From Lepidodermella squamata (Eukaryota; Animalia; Gastrotricha): a stretch of 64,000 nt of DNA. Within the stretch, counting starts at the first letter, position 1. Every line of letters starts with the position of its first letter. The stretch is from contig JBLDXI010000029.1 in assembly GCA_047495785.1 (NCBI GenBank), positions 1,922,001 to 1,986,000 of the forward strand. Reading direction: 5' to 3'. A program made the translations under genes and the position numbers. The notes below the pieces were generated by a model, which ran no database searches, was not told the origin of the DNA, and was given only the letters and a program-made list of their open reading frames with translations. Of this stretch, positions 4,819 through 15,702 are shown piece after piece.

Positions 4819-5355
4819 GGTATAATGTCGCGCTGGTCCTCGGGCGTACGCGCGCGCTGTCAGCAGGAAAGCGCGCACTCAAAAGGCGCCACTCGTTTTT
4901 ATAAGATTAATTTACGGAAGACCAGAGTTGCCACACCTTCAGGCTCTTAAAATATTCCTGAGTCATCAACATCCGAAAATCGAGAGAGAATATTTAAAAA
5001 ATTCACAATTTTTGGTTCCTCTACAGTGTGTCCCACAAGTTGCGCTACTATTTTTCACTTGGGCAACTTTTTTTTAGGAAATTTAATTTTTTTTTAAATT
5101 GAACCGTCGGAATATTCCACATTTTATCCACAGAAATAAAAAAATTCCGGAGAAAACCCCCTATGCTTACTCTTTCGGTAATTTTCGGTATTTTACCCTT
5201 TCAGAACAAATTTCTCCGAATTTTTTTAATTCCATTAACATTGATTTTTTGATTTTCTACACAATTTTTCTGACAATGAGATGTGTCTCTCATTTTAGAG
5301 TTTCTGAACCTTTTTTCTGTGTATTTTCTTTTTGCTTTCGTTACTTACGGGAAAC

Positions 5356-6126
5356 ACCTGGCTGAAGCTAGCAGGACGTATCTTGCAGGATTGTGTTCCG
5401 CTCATTTTCGCTCTTGTGCCACCCTTGTGCCATCAGTCTGAGGACCTAATTAGATAAACCAGGTGTATTCCAGAGATTGCCGCATCGATTTCATCAAGTA
5501 ATTAACGATTGACGCAATTAAGGGTCACAGTATACGCGCCCTGTTCTAAATTAACCTCGCAGGATACTGTGCCAGTCATAAAACTTGGTGGACTGGGGTA
5601 GAATTTTGCGCCGATTACGAATATGCAATCCTCTTGCGTGTCCAATCTGCGCAAAATTCGATTTGTGCCATTATTTGTGAAAATAAGCAATAAAATGACC
5701 TATCACGTGACCTTTGACCTTAGGTGAGCCTGTGCCGGCAATGCAGGATCAACCAATCGATAGAGCGGGGTCGATTACCCTAGTTTACCAATTGACAGCC
5801 CAATGCAATCAAAATCGAGTGTGGAAAACGTAGCCAAAATACCGTAAAATATCAATTTTTAGCACCGCAGGGTGACTACAACAAAAAGTGGGTCAACCAC
5901 CCTTGCAGGATTGTGTGCCAGGCATTATGAAATGACCGTCTAGACCAGTTTTTGGCCCTGATCACGAATTTCAAGTCTGTTTGCGTAACCGGAGCCGGCA
6001 AATCGGTTATTTTGCCTGATTTATGAGGAAAAACCGCGAAAATTGGCTTGTCACGTGACCTGTGACCCCAGGTGTGCCTGTGCCAGTAGCGCAGGAAGCG
6101 CCAATCGATCGGGCGTGGTCGAAAAC
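5356..6126 (+). repeat. Left TIR of the MULE, with internal sub-repeats
   Basis: Reverse complement of 14711-15481. An imperfect ~70-bp module TCACGTGACCT.TGACC..AGGTG.GCCTGTGCC occurs at ~5703 and ~6051, and GCAGGAT..TGT recurs. Confidence 0.95.
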
Positions 6127-6613
6127 GGTTGCTCTTATCGGGGCAACTTCGTCTAATGAAATCTGAACATTTAAAACGTTAATGAAATCAAGTATTTCGA
6201 TATTATTACGAATTTTTATTTTTTTTCTACAGATTATTAATTCCACTGTTTTGTTATAGTTAACGTTCCATTTTTTATAGTTAAAATGGAACGTTCAAAA
6301 AGCGGAGTACAAGATGTGATAATAAGAATGGAAAATTATTTGGATTCACTCTGGCATTCACTTCTGGGGCATTTTCACTCTTCGGAAAAGCAATTAGACA
6401 CCGACTGAGTAAATAGGATGTTAGTAGGACTTCGCATCTCAAATATATAAGAGACGCCAAATAAACAGCGCGAGTATAAATGGTATTGTATCTAGTATCG
6501 TTTCCATTCTATGCAAAAGCGTTATGATGAATGTCCAGCGATACCCTGTAGATATTAGTGTATCCCAACGAATCCAATTGCGGAGATTCAAAATTCAAAA
6601 CCGCAAAAAATAG

Positions 6614-9600
6614 TTAGCGGTCAAATATGTAGTCGCCTGAATTCAGTTGGGGTTCCGCACAGCTTAGTTCCTGTTCGTCTGGCGTACGCCCAAGAATAAG
6701 AAAAACGCCCAGCCATTTTTTCAAGGCGGGTGATTCAGGCCGCAGGTAATTCCGTCTCGCCTTCCCCTCGGTGACAAGGGTATAATCCAACGGGAAAGAA
6801 CCAGGCGTGAGGAGGCCGTAGTTTGACGTGCCACTTTGCCTAGCCACGACGGCGACGACTTCATAGCTGGATATTACTGCTACATTACATGTTTTACGTT
6901 TCTTAACAAAAATTTACCTCAGATTCTGGAATGATAATTGCGTTAGATTCAGGCATTTGCTAAGGGCTACAAGACCATCAATGGCGATGATGATGGTGGG
7001 GCTTGGCGAAACTCGGCCATCTTCGTGATGATGAGTGCCAACACTGATCAGCCTCGTGCCCTGGCATGGCGATCTGAACAAATTTCAACCCCAAAATTTT
7101 AACCTGGCCGTTAATTCAACAATATTTAGTGGATTTTACCCGCTAGATTCCACGTATTGACAATCGGTCGAAGTCTGACCGAATCGGTTGCTCAACATTT
7201 CCTCTAGCTGCCGCGTAGATGGAAAGCTACAAATTAATTGGCATTCAAAATTGATCCGAAGAAATGAATTGATAAAGCACACCTGCTTTGATCCGACTCG
7301 ATGATGAGGAACGGATTCGTAATGAATTCTGTCCGAGGCGGAGAGGTGCAGAATTCATTTTGGCAGTTGCCAACTTTCCGAGAAAGCCCACATCGGTCAA
7401 TAGCAAAGATCGCTGAGCACAACTGACTGGGCCTTATATCGTCAAAGCTGTACACTCTGCCCCCATCTTCACGCCGAACAGCGAAATCAGAGTACAGCTC
7501 TTCGATCAAAATGCCTCGCCTGGCTCGGAGTTCGAAGCGAGTCGCTGTTTTATTGCTGATGGCTTCCAAATAAGAAACCCATTTACCTGGGCATAGACTT
7601 TGGCGGATTGGGGCCATGCCCATAGCAAATAGGTCAAAAGGTCGCGTGCTTCTTAGGTCAACATCATGACTTGCAAAGTCAGAGGCAGGCAATTGGTCGA
7701 GCACGCTGAGTCCCAAGGCGAAGCTGATTTCTTGGGCTTCCGATCCATCCGAAGCCAAATCATCGAAAGTCCAAGCGTCCTTGCGCGACTTACCTTTCCC
7801 CGGATTGTCTTTGCGGGTTTTAGGAGCATTAGGAGACTTCGGAGACTTCAGAACTTTGGGAGCCTTGGGAGCCTTTGGAGCCTTGGGAACCTTGGGATCC
7901 TTGGGAGCTTTCGGAGCCCTCGAAACTTTCGGAGCTTTCGCAGCCTTGCGAGGCTTCGGATCTTTTACGGTCTTCGCAGCTCTTCGAGGCTTTGAATCTT
8001 TGGGCGTTGGATTTTCCAGAGGCTCCGGTGCATTCGCAAGCTTTGGAATTTTCCTTGGCTTTGAATCTTTGGCTATCAGGGTTGTTTCTGGAGCCCTTCG
8101 TCGCTGGGATGCCATGGGCTGACTTGCTGTAGCTGAGCTTACTGAGGCCGGCTCATCATCCATAGCCGAAACTATCGACGAACTTTCCAATACCATCCCG
8201 CTATCTTGCAATCGTGTGGGTATTTCAAATTGGAAATTGCTCAATTCGTAAATCGCCTCTAGACCGGCCAGTCTATATAGTTAACATTAAAGTCCCAATA
8301 TCGTCCCATATAAATAATAAGCAGGCAGCCATTCTATACCTAGAAAATGAGCTTTTCCCAACAGCCGAGAGCTGCTGTGACTCTTTGCTGCTGAGATCCA
8401 TTGCAGCATGGGCCTGTTCGGAATAGGGTGGAGGGGGTGAAGGTGGAAGTGGGACGCTAAATTATCATATAGCTAGACAAGTCCTTCAAAGTAAAACACA
8501 AAAATCACCTGGAAGATGGAACAGATTCCACGAACGTAGCAACATCAGCCGAAACAGGTTTGGGACAGCAGTAAAAGAAAATAACTGCGTAGTAAAGGCG
8601 ATAGAATTTCTGAAGCTCATTGTCGAATTTTCGCCAAAACGGTTTCCGTGTACGTGAGCTGACTACAAGATCGTCAAGCAAGTAAGCGTCACCATCGATG
8701 ATCCTGATAGTGACGTAATGTCCCGAGCCTTCCCTATCCTCGGTTCTCTTGCCTTCTGCTCGATTAGGCTCGCTGAAAAGAATAGCGCTGTGAAGCGAAT
8801 ATCTTTAGGGGAAAGGAGATCTGACATTTGGCTTCATTTACAACACTAAGATGAAGACTTACGAAAAGTGTTCCATTTCAAGAGACTTGGGAGCTTGGTT
8901 GAGAACAGTGGTTGCTGTCCACTCCCAACTCGACTCAAACTCGATGGCAATAAAAGGTAGGGGCTTGCTTGGATCATGATGCCTAGCGGGTGATAGCATT
9001 CGATGATGGTTTTTGCAACGGCACATCACAATGTCCTCAAAAAATAAGGCGTCGATTTGCGCTTGGAAAGTCACCCTTTGCAACGCTGTATTTGCTCGAA
9101 CAGCCTCATAGTGCTGCGCATTTTCCCTACAAATTAATGAAATAAATAGATAAAAGCCTTGAATGGGACAGAAAACTGACGCCTCAATAGAACCCAATAA
9201 GACAGGATTAACCACTTTTTGTATCTGAGTCGGCTTACGGCATTCTTCACACGGATGTAGGTCTCGCAGTAAATAGCAGCCATCAAGTTCACACATTTGC
9301 GTAAGCCAAAGCATACAATTTCCATCTCCAACATTGGAAACTCGCATCTCGTAATGATCAATTGGGCAGCAAATTGATGAATCAGGGGATACTTCGATGA
9401 CCCGACCGAAGCAATCAATTGGCAACAACCTAGTTTCATTGTTCCTCGGAAACACTCTGCCCATAAATCTGAATCTGGCTAACTGAGCCATCCTCTCGCC
9501 GTTTTCACTAGAAGCCGCGTCCTTTAGATTCCTCAGATAGTCCACCAGCTCGGACCCACAGAAACGCTCCATTTCGCAATGGGACACGGCGTTAATCAGG

Positions 9601-12600
9601 CTGTCCACTGCACACGTGTTGCTGGTTACGTGAAAGAACTCTTCTTTATCGGTTGAGAAAATTTTAACACTCCCTCCGTTTTGCAGCAAATATACGCCAC
9701 CTGACAACATTGTTTCAGTTACGATGACCGATTTCGCAGCCCCGCGTTGGTCATTTCCAGTTCCACGCGCAGGTCTTTCCGAAGTCCCAGCCGTTGGACC
9801 AGTCGAGGTTCCAGCAATTGGACCAGTCGAGGTTCCAGCAATTGGACCAGTCGAGGTTCCAGCCATTGGACCAGTCGAGGTTCCAGCCATTGGACCAGTC
9901 GAGGTTCCAGCCATTGGACCAGTCGAGGTTCTAGCCATGGGACCAGTCGAGGTTCCAGCCATTGGACCAGTCGAGGTCCCAGCCATTGGACCAGTCGAGG
10001 TTCCAGCCATTGGACCAGTCGAGGTTCTAGCCATTGGACCAGTCGAGGTCCCAGCCGTTGGACCAGCCGAGGTCCCAGCCGTTGGACCAGTTGAGGTCCC
10101 AGGCGTGAAAACACATCCCAAAATGTCATCAGACACAGAGAAATCGGATTGTTCTGAATCGGAAGTTGAAGAGCTGAGGATGTCGTTGTAGGCCTCGTCC
10201 ACACCCCCATCACTTCCAAGGTCCCAAATGGGACGTTTAGGAGGCAAGGATTCCGTTGCTGAGCTAATCTTGGATGTTTGCTGGTAAGTAACTTCGAACC
10301 TCGCGGAAAATTCCTTAACCAGACGTTGAGCAGCATATCCGATCCTTTGCCGACGTTTTTCTTTCCGAAATTTTTCGACCTCTTTATCAGCAGTATCAGC
10401 CTGTCTGTTTCGTTTCTGTGGGGCCGGCATCTCGTCGGAGAGCTCGATTGCTGCCAGACGGCCAGATTGGCTGACTTCCAGCTTTCGTACAACAGCGGCA
10501 ATTGACTGCTTCTTCTTACCTCCCAAGATGACGTTCTTCGTTGTATTTATTTCTGCTTCAACTGCCCCATTAGTGTAGTGACCAGGCGGCTTTTCCCATT
10601 TGGGACTGAAAGATTTGAAAATATTTTTACGAGTCTTTTCTACTACTTTCAACCACCCAGGGTGCCATGTGACTAAAATACTGAACTACGTTTCAAATTT
10701 AAGAGCACCAAGTGATCGAAATTGTTTTTATTCATAGTTTATTATTAAAACTCACAAACGCTTCGCTGCAATTCCGCTAACGAAGAGAGCAGACCAAAGA
10801 GGAAAAAGCGGCAAAAGTCTGTCAAGAAGCGCATCCATTGCGAATTTCGCGTAGAAGATATTGCGGGTTGAATCACCATCAGCTTCCATTTCATCTGCGG
10901 CTGGAATTGAGTCGTCAATCGACCGTTCCCGAATGTAGGAAAACATTCCACAACAGGCCGAGAGCTTTTTATATGTCCCACATTGAAATTCTTTGGAATC
11001 ATCTGGCCCAGCTATGATATTCGAACAAGCTTCACCGTTTAAATCTTCAACAAATTCTTCATCTCCTTGTATGGGAACCTCGGCTTTTGGCATACTTTCT
11101 GCGTAGATCTGCATCAGTGAGTTTAGATGGCTAATAGCCAACTCAACGTCTTCGCCATAATTCTCGGTATCGAATACCTTGCACATCAGGTGGAAAATCA
11201 TGAGAGCCAGACCAAGGTTCTGAGCACTCTGCAGAAATGCGAAGCATTGCATAAAAAAGGTTTTTACATGCTTTTGCAAGTATTTTCTTCCTTTTGAATT
11301 CAAAATTCCCATGACTTCTTTGAATAGATGAGCCATGCAAAGGACGAGCAACGTGAAATGACCCAAATCAGACTGGATCTCGCTTTGAACTTTCCCAGAA
11401 GAATCGCGAAGAGCTGAAAAGGTGTAGTTGAGAACTCGCTGCAGGCGGCATTGATTATAACATCGTGCTACAGCTTGCATCAAGGCAAAAGAATGATCGG
11501 TTACCACTGCATAAGGAGCCAGAACTTTGCCGCCTACTACATCATCCCAAGTGCTCCAAAGTACCTGAAGTGCATTGGAGATGGAAAATGCGTGCTGGTC
11601 AGAGAGGAAAAACTGTCCCATCGGAACCTTGGGACCACTTTCACCCAGCATTGGACAACGCATGCAGAGCAGGTATAGGAAAACCCGTTTTCCAGTTAAT
11701 AAATCATCCGCAACGACTTCACCCGTTGAATTAACATGAAAAACGTGGGATCTCCTCGCTTGCCGAGCCCATGTCTGACCCAGCCGAAATTGGCGATCGT
11801 AGCCAAGTACTACGCCGAGCGGTAGCATTGAGACACCTCGAGCGTACCGTAGCTCATCGTCCAGCGTCATTTGATCAACCAGCCACAAGAAGAGGTCAAT
11901 GTATGGATTCTCGTGCATTCTTTGCTCCAAAATTTTGATCCGAAGATATCTTCTGAAGAACGGTCTCACTTGGTATAGCAGCCAAATTCACAAACTCTCC
12001 TTGTAAAAGGAAAAATACAGGTTATAACCGGTAAGAAAAAGCCAGCTAACTTTATGTAAAAATAATATCGAATAATAACACATTTCGTCTTTCCATTTCG
12101 AACACCGAACCAAAACTACAACAGACTCGGAAGTCGAATCAATGCGGTGTTATAGAAATATTCGGGTATGAAAAGTGGGCACCTTTATTTTAGGATTCCC
12201 GTGCTAACTACAACCGATATTGATTTAAAGTTTCGATTTTACAAATCTATTATTTTTCCGATAATATGAGAAGTCTCGGAAGAAAATATTCGAAATATTT
12301 CTTCTTAGCTGACGACATTATTTATAGGCTAACAAAATGTCTTCGTGAGGGCTTCAATATCGATCAAGAAAATTAAATAATTAAATTTTTTAATAAAATA
12401 AAAAATTCACCTCGAACTCTTCTTTTGTGAGCCTGATCGAGCAAAGCCCATAGGTAGGCCGCGGGTTTCTGCTGTCGTAGCTCTTTCGCCAACTGTTTTC
12501 GAGCAACACCTCGCGTTTGGATGGTTCGTGGCGTAACCGGCTCATGCACCAGTGTCCCAATAATGGTTACCGTTACAGGAATACGATTATCCTGATTGAG

Positions 12601-13291
12601 TTGCCTGGGGTTGAACCTGAACTTGAACTTGCGGCAACCACTTTCTGCCTGGCAATACCCAGCACAAGTTACCGATGATCCGTTCTTGGTCACGTCGCTG
12701 TATTTCAGTTTAACGTCGCATTTGCGGACTTCTGCGGTCATTTTCGACTGAAATAGGGTTGTCCAACCTGGCTTCAGGTGTTTGGACTGACGAGCTGATG
12801 GCAGATAAGGCGCAACTTCTTCTAGCGTTAACTGGAACTCATCGACAGCCTCCGGTATTGTCGCTGGCGATTTTTTTTCCATCACCTTCTTATTCCTGAT
12901 GTTTGGAGCCTCCAATGACTCGGTCAACGAAGAGCTGTTACTAGTCGACTCGCTGCTGAGAAACTGAGGATGGTTATTTGCTATGTGCGTGTAGAGCCTG
13001 TGGCGAAGTGGACCGTCATTTTCACTGAATAGACGAGCTGCCAACCGCCCTACAACGGACTCGTGCCGTCGCCAACCTACGAATTCCATTATTAAAATCT
13101 CCATCAATTACTTATATCCCATTTTTATCACCTGAAACTAGTTGACCAGGATTTTTTTTGAAGAAATCCAGCAGCTTTTTGTCATCGATTGGCCTGTTGT
13201 CTTTGGCCCTCCGCCGAGCAGCACTGGCAGCAGGTGCCTCTAAAGACAGCATCACCAGGTACAGCAGTAACAAACCGATAGGCTTGAACAT
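6614..13291 (-). CDS. Multi-exon MULE/NOF-FB-type DDE transposase fused to USP-like peptidase domain(s); this copy is probably defective
   Basis: N-terminal GWT...C...GYC...C Zn-finger-like region. Core motifs HV(N)STG, VVTDHSFAL, LCMAH (CxxH) and TNGAVE. Then an octapeptide repeat, a USP Cys box NTCAVDS, a His box GHYV...YLLDD and a PKAPK repeat. Exons join with consistent phases except for an apparent +1 frameshift near 11930. Start codon uncertain. Confidence 0.8.
7815..8075 (-). repeat. Coding Lys/Pro-rich short repeats (PKA/PKD/PKS; KDSKPR)
   Basis: 9-nt periodic GGAGCCTT(T/G) units; translation KAPKVSRAPKAPKDPKVPKAPKAPK. Confidence 0.85.
9789..10100 (-). repeat. 24-bp coding minisatellite, 13 units (GTSTGP[M/T/I]A)
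   Basis: Unit GGACCAGTCGAGGTTCCAGCCATT on +, in frame within the transposase gene. Confidence 0.95.
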
Positions 13292-13324
13292 CACATTGCG
13301 CCCTGAAAAATATAGGTTGAATAT

Positions 13325-13409
13325 ATATCGCCATTGGGCTAATGAAACCAGCTAAGTATATAGTATTTTCCTATATACTTAGCTGGTTTCACTAGCCCAA
13401 TGACGATAT
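13325..13409. repeat. Inverted repeat/hairpin, 39-bp arms, 7-nt loop
   Basis: ATATCGCCATTGGGCTAATGAAACCAGCTAAGTATATAG-tattttc-CTATATACTTAGCTGGTTTCACTAGCCCAATGACGATAT, two mismatches. Confidence 0.9.
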
Positions 13410-14710
13410 CGACTGATCAGGACTTCAATTTTCAATTTGAAATTGAACCAAACGCAAATGTATAAAATATCGAATATTTTTTAAATAATGGCGACTACGC
13501 CGCGACCTGAAGATGAGGAACAGGCCTTTCATGTTTATTGTTTTATCAATCGTAAAATTCCAGAAAATCCAAAAAAACAGTTTTGTGAGAATTAATTAAA
13601 ACTAAAAGTAAGACCGCAAACAAATATGAAAACGGCGATAGCCTCCGGCCGACCCTCCTCGGGAATATCTTACGGGTTTCAATTTAAATGTGGAGAAAGC
13701 TGAAAAAATTAGAAATACTCTCAAAATTTCCTAAAATGCAGAATGAACATGAAGCCCGAGAGCACCCAATCTATTCGAACATGCTCAATATATATGCTCA
13801 TTTCCTGTGACTCCGAACTCCCCAATAGGCGATAATCGATAATTTAAGACACTTTTAACGTCGGCAATATCGCAGATATTACAGCCGCGATATACTGAGG
13901 TAATAATAAACAGAAAATACTTACTTTTTGGCTTTGACATCCCAATCTTCAAGGCCCTGTTAACCGTATGCATCTGAGTCACCCTCTAATGTAACTAATT
14001 AGGAGATTGAAATGTATTTATCGGTAATATCCAAAATATTTTCTAAAAAAGTGTCCGCATTTTGTAAATTGATTTTATTACAAGATTTTAAGCGTTAGGC
14101 TCGAGAAAGGTGGGGGCGCATAGTAGGCTGTAGTAGGATAAAATTAAAGAGCTGCATCGTCAATTTCGCTTTTTTGAGAGAAAAAACGGTGTTTTTCACA
14201 AAATATAAGCAACGTATTTCTTTAAACACCGCAAAATGACCTCGATCAATTCTGCGAATTTCTTTAGTCGCCTATGCCCCCATACTCATTAGCAAGAATA
14301 GGCCAAACAAATCTGTCGGTCAGTACGCCTGCGCGTACGCGGGAGGGGCTTTATTGCGTGTAATAACTTTCGAAGAAGGCGCCCATTTTATTAGCGCACA
14401 CCTGTTATCGGCAATCACTTGTAGTAGTGGCGGCTCAATGTATAATAAAGCCCGTCGATAATTAGTAGACCAAATTGTATGTGGCAAATATTTTCATCTC
14501 AGCATTCTGTAATTGTAATGTCATGTAAAAAAAGAAACAGCAGAGAAATCAGCAGAGAATCGGATAAAATCGCCTGTGAAAGCGCATTCTGCTAACCGCT
14601 AAAATTGAAAATATATTGAAAAAATATATCCATATATTATTTCGGCTAATTTCAGTAACGTCTTAAATTATCAAATTTTATTGCCTAGAACTGCCCTGCT
14701 GACAGAAGGT

Positions 14711-15481
14711 GTTTTCGACCACGCCCGATCGATTGGCGCTTCCTGCGCTACTGGCACAGGCACACCTGGGGTCACAGGTCACGTGACAAGCCAATTTTCG
14801 CGGTTTTTCCTCATAAATCAGGCAAAATAACCGATTTGCCGGCTCCGGTTACGCAAACGGACTTGAAATTCGTGATCAGGGCCAAAAACTGGTCTAGACG
14901 GTCATTTCATAATGCCTGGCACACAATCCTGCAAGGGTGGTTGACCCACTTTTTGTTGTAGTCACCCTGCGGTGCTAAAAATTGATATTTTACGGTATTT
15001 TGGCTACGTTTTCCACACTCGATTTTGATTGCATTGGGCTGTCAATTGGTAAACTAGGGTAATCGACCCCGCTCTATCGATTGGTTGATCCTGCATTGCC
15101 GGCACAGGCTCACCTAAGGTCAAAGGTCACGTGATAGGTCATTTTATTGCTTATTTTCACAAATAATGGCACAAATCGAATTTTGCGCAGATTGGACACG
15201 CAAGAGGATTGCATATTCGTAATCGGCGCAAAATTCTACCCCAGTCCACCAAGTTTTATGACTGGCACAGTATCCTGCGAGGTTAATTTAGAACAGGGCG
15301 CGTATACTGTGACCCTTAATTGCGTCAATCGTTAATTACTTGATGAAATCGATGCGGCAATCTCTGGAATACACCTGGTTTATCTAATTAGGTCCTCAGA
15401 CTGATGGCACAAGGGTGGCACAAGAGCGAAAATGAGCGGAACACAATCCTGCAAGATACGTCCTGCTAGCTTCAGCCGGGT
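14711..15481 (-). repeat. Right TIR of the MULE
   Basis: Reverse complement of 5356-6126. Confidence 0.95.
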
Positions 15482-15702
15482 ACGGGAAACGCTGTATTAA
15501 GGTAGATTTCGGATTTTGTAGGAATTTCCTGTATCGCTATAGTCTCGAATACGATGAATATTTGTTTATTTTATTAACAGGAAATCAGCACTTCAGCTGC
15601 AAATTTGCCGAATTCAGCGAAAAACCACCAATATGTAACTCGCTTATTTTTATTGATTTATTAAAAAGTTTAAAATCCATCTCATTTTATTGCCAAAATA
15701 AA

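Follow-up and report, generated by a model that had tools for sequence, protein, structure and literature searches.

The 64,000-nucleotide stretch of the Lepidodermella squamata genome analyzed here (positions 1,922,001 to 1,986,000 of contig JBLDXI010000029.1, assembly GCA_047495785.1; hereafter, the window) contains a transposon of ~10 kb at 5356-15481. It is best explained as an intact, recently inserted, and autonomous-looking DNA transposon of the Mutator-like element (MULE) type. The minus-strand gene of this element probably encodes, downstream of a very divergent transposase, a real, divergent domain of the ubiquitin-specific protease (USP) kind, which we term D1. An initial annotation, made from the sequence letters without database searches, had described this region as a MULE transposase fused to an intact-looking USP-type deubiquitinase; it missed both the ends of the transposon and a second, apparently dead paralogous domain (D2) located downstream of D1.

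The limits of the element were defined by terminal inverted repeats (TIRs) and a target-site duplication (TSD). The two TIR arms (5356-6145 and 14692-15481) are 99% complementary over 790 nt, and a perfect 9-bp direct repeat, ACGGGAAAC, flanks the element on both sides. TSDs of 8 to 11 bp and TIRs of hundreds of base pairs are hallmarks of MULEs (PMC6446971), and both features were found at the ends of this element, in agreement with the transposon type proposed by the initial annotation. The near identity of the arms and the intact TSD point to a recent insertion. In the DNA sequencing run X1, 99 contigs matched the element at 90 to 100% identity; it therefore belongs to a multicopy family with diverged members. 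An Rfam search of positions 5356-15481 returned no match. A 25-nt motif (CTTGCAGGATTGTGT..) is located near the TIR tip at 5382-5406 and repeated at 5902-5926, with a mirror pair at 14911-14935 and 15431-15455; these repeated motifs are candidate transposase-binding sites.

One long multiexon gene runs on the minus strand of the element, from ~13100 to 8500. Its five exons (13104-12411, 11968-10756, 10680-9181, 9126-8863, and 8802-8508; stop codon at 8507-8505) encode a predicted protein of 1,322 amino acids, and the introns that separate them (442, 75, 54, and 60 nt) all display GT-AG junctions and compatible phases. The putative protease tail is distributed over two open frames. Frame 10685-8862 carries HVTSNTCAVDSLINAV, in which TGT at 9614-9612 encodes the Cys, and then CEEC, CRC, and LPFIAIEF. 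A separate frame, 8804-8508, reads YSLHSAILFS..GSGHYVTIRIIDGDAYLLDDLVV, with a His codon (CAT) at 8720-8718 and an Asp-Asp pair at 8675-8670, and ends with YAVIFFY; this frame has no ATG and is for that reason mostly absent from the list of open reading frames (ORFs). The initial annotation had thus placed the Cys, His, and Asp codons and the motifs downstream of the Cys box correctly, and the His-box exon that it reported as missing from the ORF track is indeed listed only in part. The splicing that it proposed for this exon would be accomplished by an in-phase 60-nt GT-AG intron (8862-8803), with donor TC/GTAAGT, acceptor AAAG/A, and phase 2 on both sides. Since this intron contains three in-frame stop codons, splicing is needed to join the two frames. 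The 54-nt stretch at 9180-9127 is free of stop codons; it was called an intron because it starts with GTCAGT and its last 12 nt match the end of the 56-nt intron found at the equivalent place in D2.

Spliced D1 exhibits seven USP landmarks in canonical order: the Cys box, CxxC, CxC, LP..I.F, Y.L.SA, GHY..DD..V, and YAVIFFY. Their spacing approximates the consensus of a USP profile (described below). The putative catalytic residues follow the order Cys, His, Asp, and Cys and His lie 260 residues apart after predicted splicing (277 in the profile), for an expected range of some 250 to 300. In the hmmsearch and hhalign alignments, the His-box pattern Y-x-L-x-[SAG]-[LIV]..G-H-Y, followed by [ND]-D-x-x-V, corresponds to YSLHSAIL..GSGHY..LLDDLVV. 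The candidate zinc-ribbon Cys pairs, CEEC and CRC, are 58 residues apart (48 in the profile), and the second pair is CxC instead of CxxC. The Cys box is less faithful: from the consensus G-N-T-C-aromatic-x-N-S-x-L-Q, D1 keeps N-T-C..S-L, with replacement of the Gly, the aromatic residue, the Asn, and the Gln.

The similarity of D1 to USPs was assessed with a reference set derived from giant viruses. A back-translated Cys-box pattern served to find USP genes, from which 94 USP ORFs were extracted, and a profile was made from 50 nonredundant members. Spliced D1 aligned to this profile with the Cys box at positions 21-36 and the His box at positions 297-327, i.e., with almost the same spacing as in D1 itself. 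The comparison, a single one, yielded E = 0.0086, a score that was reached by 65 of 5,000 shuffles. None of 20,000 composition-matched shuffles placed both boxes collinearly on the profile, as D1 does. We also ranked 829 ORFs from giant-virus USP loci, 111 of them being USPs by profile score, according to their phmmer similarity to D1. USPs occupied 19 of the top 25 places (attained by 2 of 300 shuffles) and 35 of the top 50 (attained by none of 300), with a maximum of 12 in 25 for 25 real control ORFs taken from the window. The N-terminal half of D1 alone, devoid of the His box, recovered USPs in 9 of the top 10 places. When an alignment of D1 and D2 was compared to the USP alignment with hhalign, the second Cys pair, the LP strand, Y-x-L, and GHY..DD all fell within one local alignment (P = 0.006). 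Language-model searches of the ESM Atlas pointed in the same direction, with PF00443 (UCH) accounting for 34 of the 60 clusters nearest to the His-box exon (top score, 0.92) and with UCH clusters at 0.84 to 0.86 from the N-terminal piece of D1. Controlled tests place the resemblance of D1 to USPs at a significance of about p < 0.01, with the individual tests reaching only ~0.003 to 0.02. PDB sequence searches with both D1 pieces returned noise only, and no related loci were found in metagenome contigs, in viral contigs, or, by tblastn, in a phage collection.

The transposase portion of the protein was assigned from the element ends, motifs identified by eye, and language-model neighbors, leads that point to a very divergent DDE transposase of the Mutator kind. 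The motifs comprise VVTDHS, LCMAH (a C-x2-H motif), and TNGAVEAEINTTK (AVEAEIN). At the first catalytic position, where Asp is expected, there appears, by eye, to be an Asn (HVNSTG; 11732-11730 on the minus strand, model residue 311). In the ESM Atlas, MULE and ZSWIM RNaseH-like clusters are found among the neighbors of the core exon (scores, 0.84 to 0.90), which we take as a lead only. A word-index homologue search with the transposase exon retrieved nothing, even at E ≤ 10.

Several observations weigh against the proposal of a USP-like domain within an autonomous MULE. A Pfam search of all stop-free pieces detected no UCH (PF00443), UCH_1, C98, or C48 match to the tail, and no MULE (PF10551), Transposase_mut (PF00872), or other match to the transposase pieces, in either case even at E ≤ 10. 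An exhaustive phmmer search of a 276-residue piece of D1 against 1.84 billion representative proteins produced one spurious match, to a repeat protein, and a word-index homologue search with the D1 piece yielded nothing. The hhalign probability associated with the local alignment mentioned above was only ~6%. Furthermore, all these statistics were computed on a domain that had been picked beforehand, by an earlier reader, for looking like a USP. The structural modeling suggested alongside the initial annotation was carried out with AlphaFold on stop-free pieces, as single-sequence models; the low confidence values for the 276-residue D1 piece (pLDDT, 31.7) and the transposase exon (pLDDT, 40.3) provide no usable fold evidence. 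Within the Cys box, D1 has Val instead of the usual Asn five residues before the Cys, Ala in place of the aromatic residue that follows it, Asp-Ser for Asn-Ser, and Asn for the closing Gln; the description of the domain as intact looking was therefore too generous. The splicing, and with it the fusion of the protease tail to the transposase, was deduced from the sequence. Finally, given the apparent Asn at the first catalytic position, this copy, or the family, may be nonautonomous and depend on another source of transposase. On balance, the USP/C19-like order and spacing of the triad claimed by the initial annotation are borne out by the landmarks, their collinearity, and the presence of Cys, His, and Asp, and find no counterpart in Pfam; the USP reading is backed only at the level of motifs and statistics.

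D2 is predicted to comprise four exons (8272-7283, 7226-7140, 7073-6918, and 6866-6617), with GT-AG introns of 56, 66, and 51 nt in between. BLASTP aligned it to D1 over 144 amino acids with 21% identity (E = 4e-4). Two of the D2 introns share alignment position and phase with both D1 introns, and the 12-nt intron end is identical. By itself, D2 showed no significant USP likeness; it was assigned as USP-like because it is paralogous to D1. D2 retains a Y-x-V-x-A-V-V stretch that is more canonical than that of D1. It looks catalytically dead, since the His is replaced by Asn and its first half is apparently shortened. The 21% identity between D1 and D2, inside an element with 99% identical ends, indicates that their duplication is far older than the insertion and that the domain has been carried by the transposon lineage. 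D1 and D2 could be connected in phase by removal of a 236-nt intron (8508-8273; donor, 8509/8508; acceptor, 8273/8272). The gene would then read on through nine exons, with a predicted product of 1,816 amino acids; alternatively, D2 may belong to a separate gene. A 9/27-nt tandem repeat at 7823-7965 encodes a Pro/Lys-rich linker of the KAPKAPK type between the two domains. The collapsed X1 contig that covers D2 is missing 2 plus 4 bases at 7284-7290, exactly at the proposed donor of the 56-nt intron; other copies are thus distinguished here by a 6-nt deletion that preserves the frame.

Three other explanations of the tail were weighed against a divergent USP-like domain. It could be a Cys-rich domain of another or a novel fold, e.g., a zinc-binding module for DNA or protein interaction, that lacks protease activity and resembles USPs by chance. 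The silence of curated family models and protein databases favors this interpretation, as do the modest significance of each individual test, the selection of the domain for its motifs, and the low-confidence AlphaFold model. A chance resemblance would nonetheless have to account for seven collinear landmarks at USP-like spacing, a placement of both boxes that no shuffle reproduced, the recovery of USPs by the N-terminal half in the absence of the His box, the independent language-model assignment of the His-box exon to UCH, and the even more canonical Y-x-V-x-A-V-V of the paralogue. We consider it rather unlikely for these reasons. The second explanation retains a USP/PLpro-like fold for D1 and assigns it a different main task, namely, cleavage of the transposon's own polyprotein to release the transposase, with deubiquitinase activity being secondary. 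The papain-like protease of coronaviruses (PLpro), which adopts a USP-like fold, cleaves after LxGG, and LxGG sites also occur in ubiquitin-like proteins. D1 is preceded by such a sequence, LSGG (model residues 961-964), at its border with the repeat linker, 28 residues upstream of the catalytic Cys. The predicted product is very long (1,322 or 1,816 amino acids) and has repeat linkers between its modules, and the language-model neighbors of the N-terminal piece of D1 include clan-CA proteases of viruses, e.g., the C28 L protease. However, by our estimate a single LxGG is expected by chance within ~60 residues in about 3 of 100 cases, which makes it weak evidence, and no matching LxGG site precedes D2. 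Self-processing as the main function therefore appears unlikely to us.

A broader version of this scenario would place the tail in a deep, unrecognized transposon-borne branch of USP/PLpro-like proteins, consisting of an active domain and a dead paralogue, in which cutting at LSGG would be combined with the removal of ubiquitin-type modifiers, a polyprotein strategy of the kind used by viruses, adopted here by a cut-and-paste DNA transposon; we regard this as quite improbable. The third explanation is that D1 is a decaying fragment of a host USP taken up by the transposon through transduplication of the Pack-MULE type. Fragments of host genes are known to be picked up by MULEs (PMC8277862), and introns are present in both D1 and D2. 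A recent capture, however, would be expected to match Pfam UCH and host USPs strongly, and no such match was found in the Pfam and phmmer searches; moreover, all exons are open and in phase with the transposase, and the 21% identity of D1 and D2 versus the 99% identity of the TIRs speaks for a domain long carried by the lineage. With no Pfam UCH match and a D1-D2 duplication far older than the insertion, we rejected the recent acquisition of a host USP, and we consider host capture in general very unlikely.

If D1 is a divergent USP-like domain, as we favor, the complete protein would consist of an N-terminal Cys/His region, the very divergent DDE transposase, a repeat linker, D1, a Pro/Lys-rich linker, and the old, degenerate D2. 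The analysis directly established where the element ends, which exons are open and in which phase, what motifs they encode, and that the tail resembles USPs statistically; the splicing, the fold, the deubiquitinase activity, the substrate, and the role are inferred. D1 would most likely be a functional cysteine isopeptidase that acts on ubiquitin or on a ubiquitin-like modifier. It might process the transposase itself, or else factors of chromatin or repair where transposition takes place, as has been suggested for Ulp1 (MULEs), OTU (Helitrons and Ginger1), and VTD (Helentrons). The initial annotation had suggested that the deubiquitinase might shield the transposase from degradation, edit histone ubiquitin at target sites, or counter silencing. 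D2 would serve as a noncatalytic binding or scaffold module. Protection of transposition proteins from degradation and action on repair or chromatin factors have both been proposed for transposon proteases (PMC2836005; PMC9741609).

The closest known arrangement within the same transposon superfamily is that of the MULEs with an Ulp1/C48 domain (KI-MULE and VANDAL-type elements; hydra, lancelet, and plant Mutator) as cited in PMC2836005, i.e., Mutator elements with a C-terminal clan-CE/CA cysteine isopeptidase in the transposase or in a companion ORF. The Ulp1 catalytic residues follow the order His-Asp-Cys in a compact fold, whereas those of D1 follow the USP-like order Cys..His..Asp, with Cys pairs in between. 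The only published precedent that we found for a transposase joined to a C19 domain is XP_001314237.1 of Trichomonas vaginalis (PMC2836005). This protein combines a DDE transposase (transposase_11, IS5-like) with Peptidase C19; it differs from the protein described here in that the transposase belongs to another superfamily and the C19 domain is recognized by standard domain models, whereas our domain, in a MULE, escapes Pfam. The OTU domains of Helitrons and Ginger1 and the VTDs of Helentrons are likewise transposon-encoded cysteine proteases of the deubiquitinase type with conserved catalytic residues (PMC2836005; PMC9741609), but they represent other protease families in other transposon classes, and the VTD active site contains Asp-x-His. 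VTDs are active deubiquitinases proposed to protect transposition proteins, and inactive duplicated copies of them are known (PMC9741609). With the cellular and giant-virus USPs (PF00443), D1 shares the order and spacing of the Cys box, Cys pairs, LP strand, Y-x-L, G-H-Y, D-D-x-x-V, and final aromatic strand; it departs from them in the absence of matches at curated HMM thresholds, the CxC form of the second pair, and a longer loop before GHY.

Among described MULEs, the Rehavkus group of arthropods and annelids (PMC6446971, Table 1) shares with this element a 9-bp TSD, TIRs of up to hundreds of base pairs, a single ORF, and a C-terminal minisatellite. The published description of Rehavkus includes a PHD finger and no protease, whereas Pfam detected no PHD match here; the two were compared by description only. 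The tandem repeats of 9/27 nt (7823-7965) and 24 nt (9780-10102) together recall the "minisatellite in C-term" listed for that group (PMC6446971). A broad review of MULE diversity names no protease (PMC6446971), and our literature searches, with Repbase reports outside their scope, retrieved no paper on a USP-type domain in a MULE. Proteases of the ubiquitin and SUMO systems have been acquired independently by several transposon classes, namely, Ulp1 (MULEs and Ginger1), OTU (Helitrons and Ginger1), and VTD (Helentrons); among these, activity has been demonstrated for VTD only. If confirmed, the USP-type domain of this young and apparently mobile MULE would be the fourth protease type carried by transposons and would strengthen the idea that DNA transposition generally requires the removal of ubiquitin-type marks. 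Since neither Pfam nor large-scale HMMER searches detect the domain, similar tails have probably been overlooked in transposon annotation. Being complete (ends, target duplication, and open gene) and multicopy, the element offers a concrete system for testing the role of a protease in a transposon.

Table 1. Coordinates of the transposon, its coding parts, and its repeats (window positions)
Feature	Positions	Strand	Remarks
Whole transposon, ~10 kb	5356-15481		Limits set by TIRs and TSD
Left TSD, ACGGGAAAC, 9 bp	5347-5355	.	Same letters as 15482-15490
Left TIR, 790 nt	5356-6145	.	25-nt motif of the tip found again ~520 nt inside
Last D2 exon: YEVVAVVARQSGTSNYG, with Asn (6823-6821) at the place of the D1 catalytic His	6617-6866; stop 6616-6614	minus	Intron position and phase as for the D1 His-box exon
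D2 exon with SPSPTIIIAIDG, counterpart of the LPFIAIEF strand	6918-7073	minus	BLASTP of D1 versus D2
D2 exon between the 56-nt and 66-nt GT-AG introns	7140-7226	minus	
Pro/Lys-rich linker and first part of D2, including a zinc-ribbon-like region	7283-8272	minus	9/27-nt repeat at 7823-7965
D1 His-box exon: YSLHSAIL.., GSGHY (His 8720-8718), LLDDLVV (Asp-Asp 8675-8670), YAVIFFY	8508-8802	minus	Stop 8507-8505
60-nt GT-AG intron, phase 2	8803-8862	minus	Three in-frame stops
D1 exon: second Cys pair (CRC) and LPFIAIEF	8863-9126	minus	
Probable in-frame 54-nt GT-AG intron	9127-9180	minus	Last 12 nt as in D2 intron 7282-7227
First part of D1: LSGG, Cys box HVTSNTCAVDSLIN (Cys 9614-9612), helical region, CEEC	9181-9689	minus	
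24-nt tandem repeat, 13.5 copies, encoding the TSTGPMAG linker between transposase and D1	9780-10102	minus	
Start of exon 3, end of transposase: TNGAVEAEINTTK with candidate catalytic Glu	10103-10680	minus	Motif read by eye
Transposase core exon: HVNSTG, VVTDHS, LCMAH (C-x2-H)	10756-11968	minus	
First coding exon: Cys/His-containing N-terminal region, possible DNA-binding part	12411-13104	minus	No family match (Pfam)
Right TIR, 790 nt	14692-15481	.	
Right TSD, ACGGGAAAC, 9 bp	15482-15490	.	

Two further repeats were noted at the 5′ end of the gene. Within the 442-nt first intron, the summed contig depth of run X1 rose to ~3,830 at 12201-12400, compared to ~170 to 200 elsewhere in the element, with loose contig ends at 12214/12215 and several small insertions read at 12382-12391. 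This intron seems to hold a much more abundant short repeat, for which no clear TIR or TSD was found near 12201-12400. The first coding exon is preceded, at a distance of ~220 nt, by a 39-nt inverted repeat (13325-13409) with 95% complementarity and a 7-nt spacer, which could represent either a regulatory hairpin or a small inserted palindrome.

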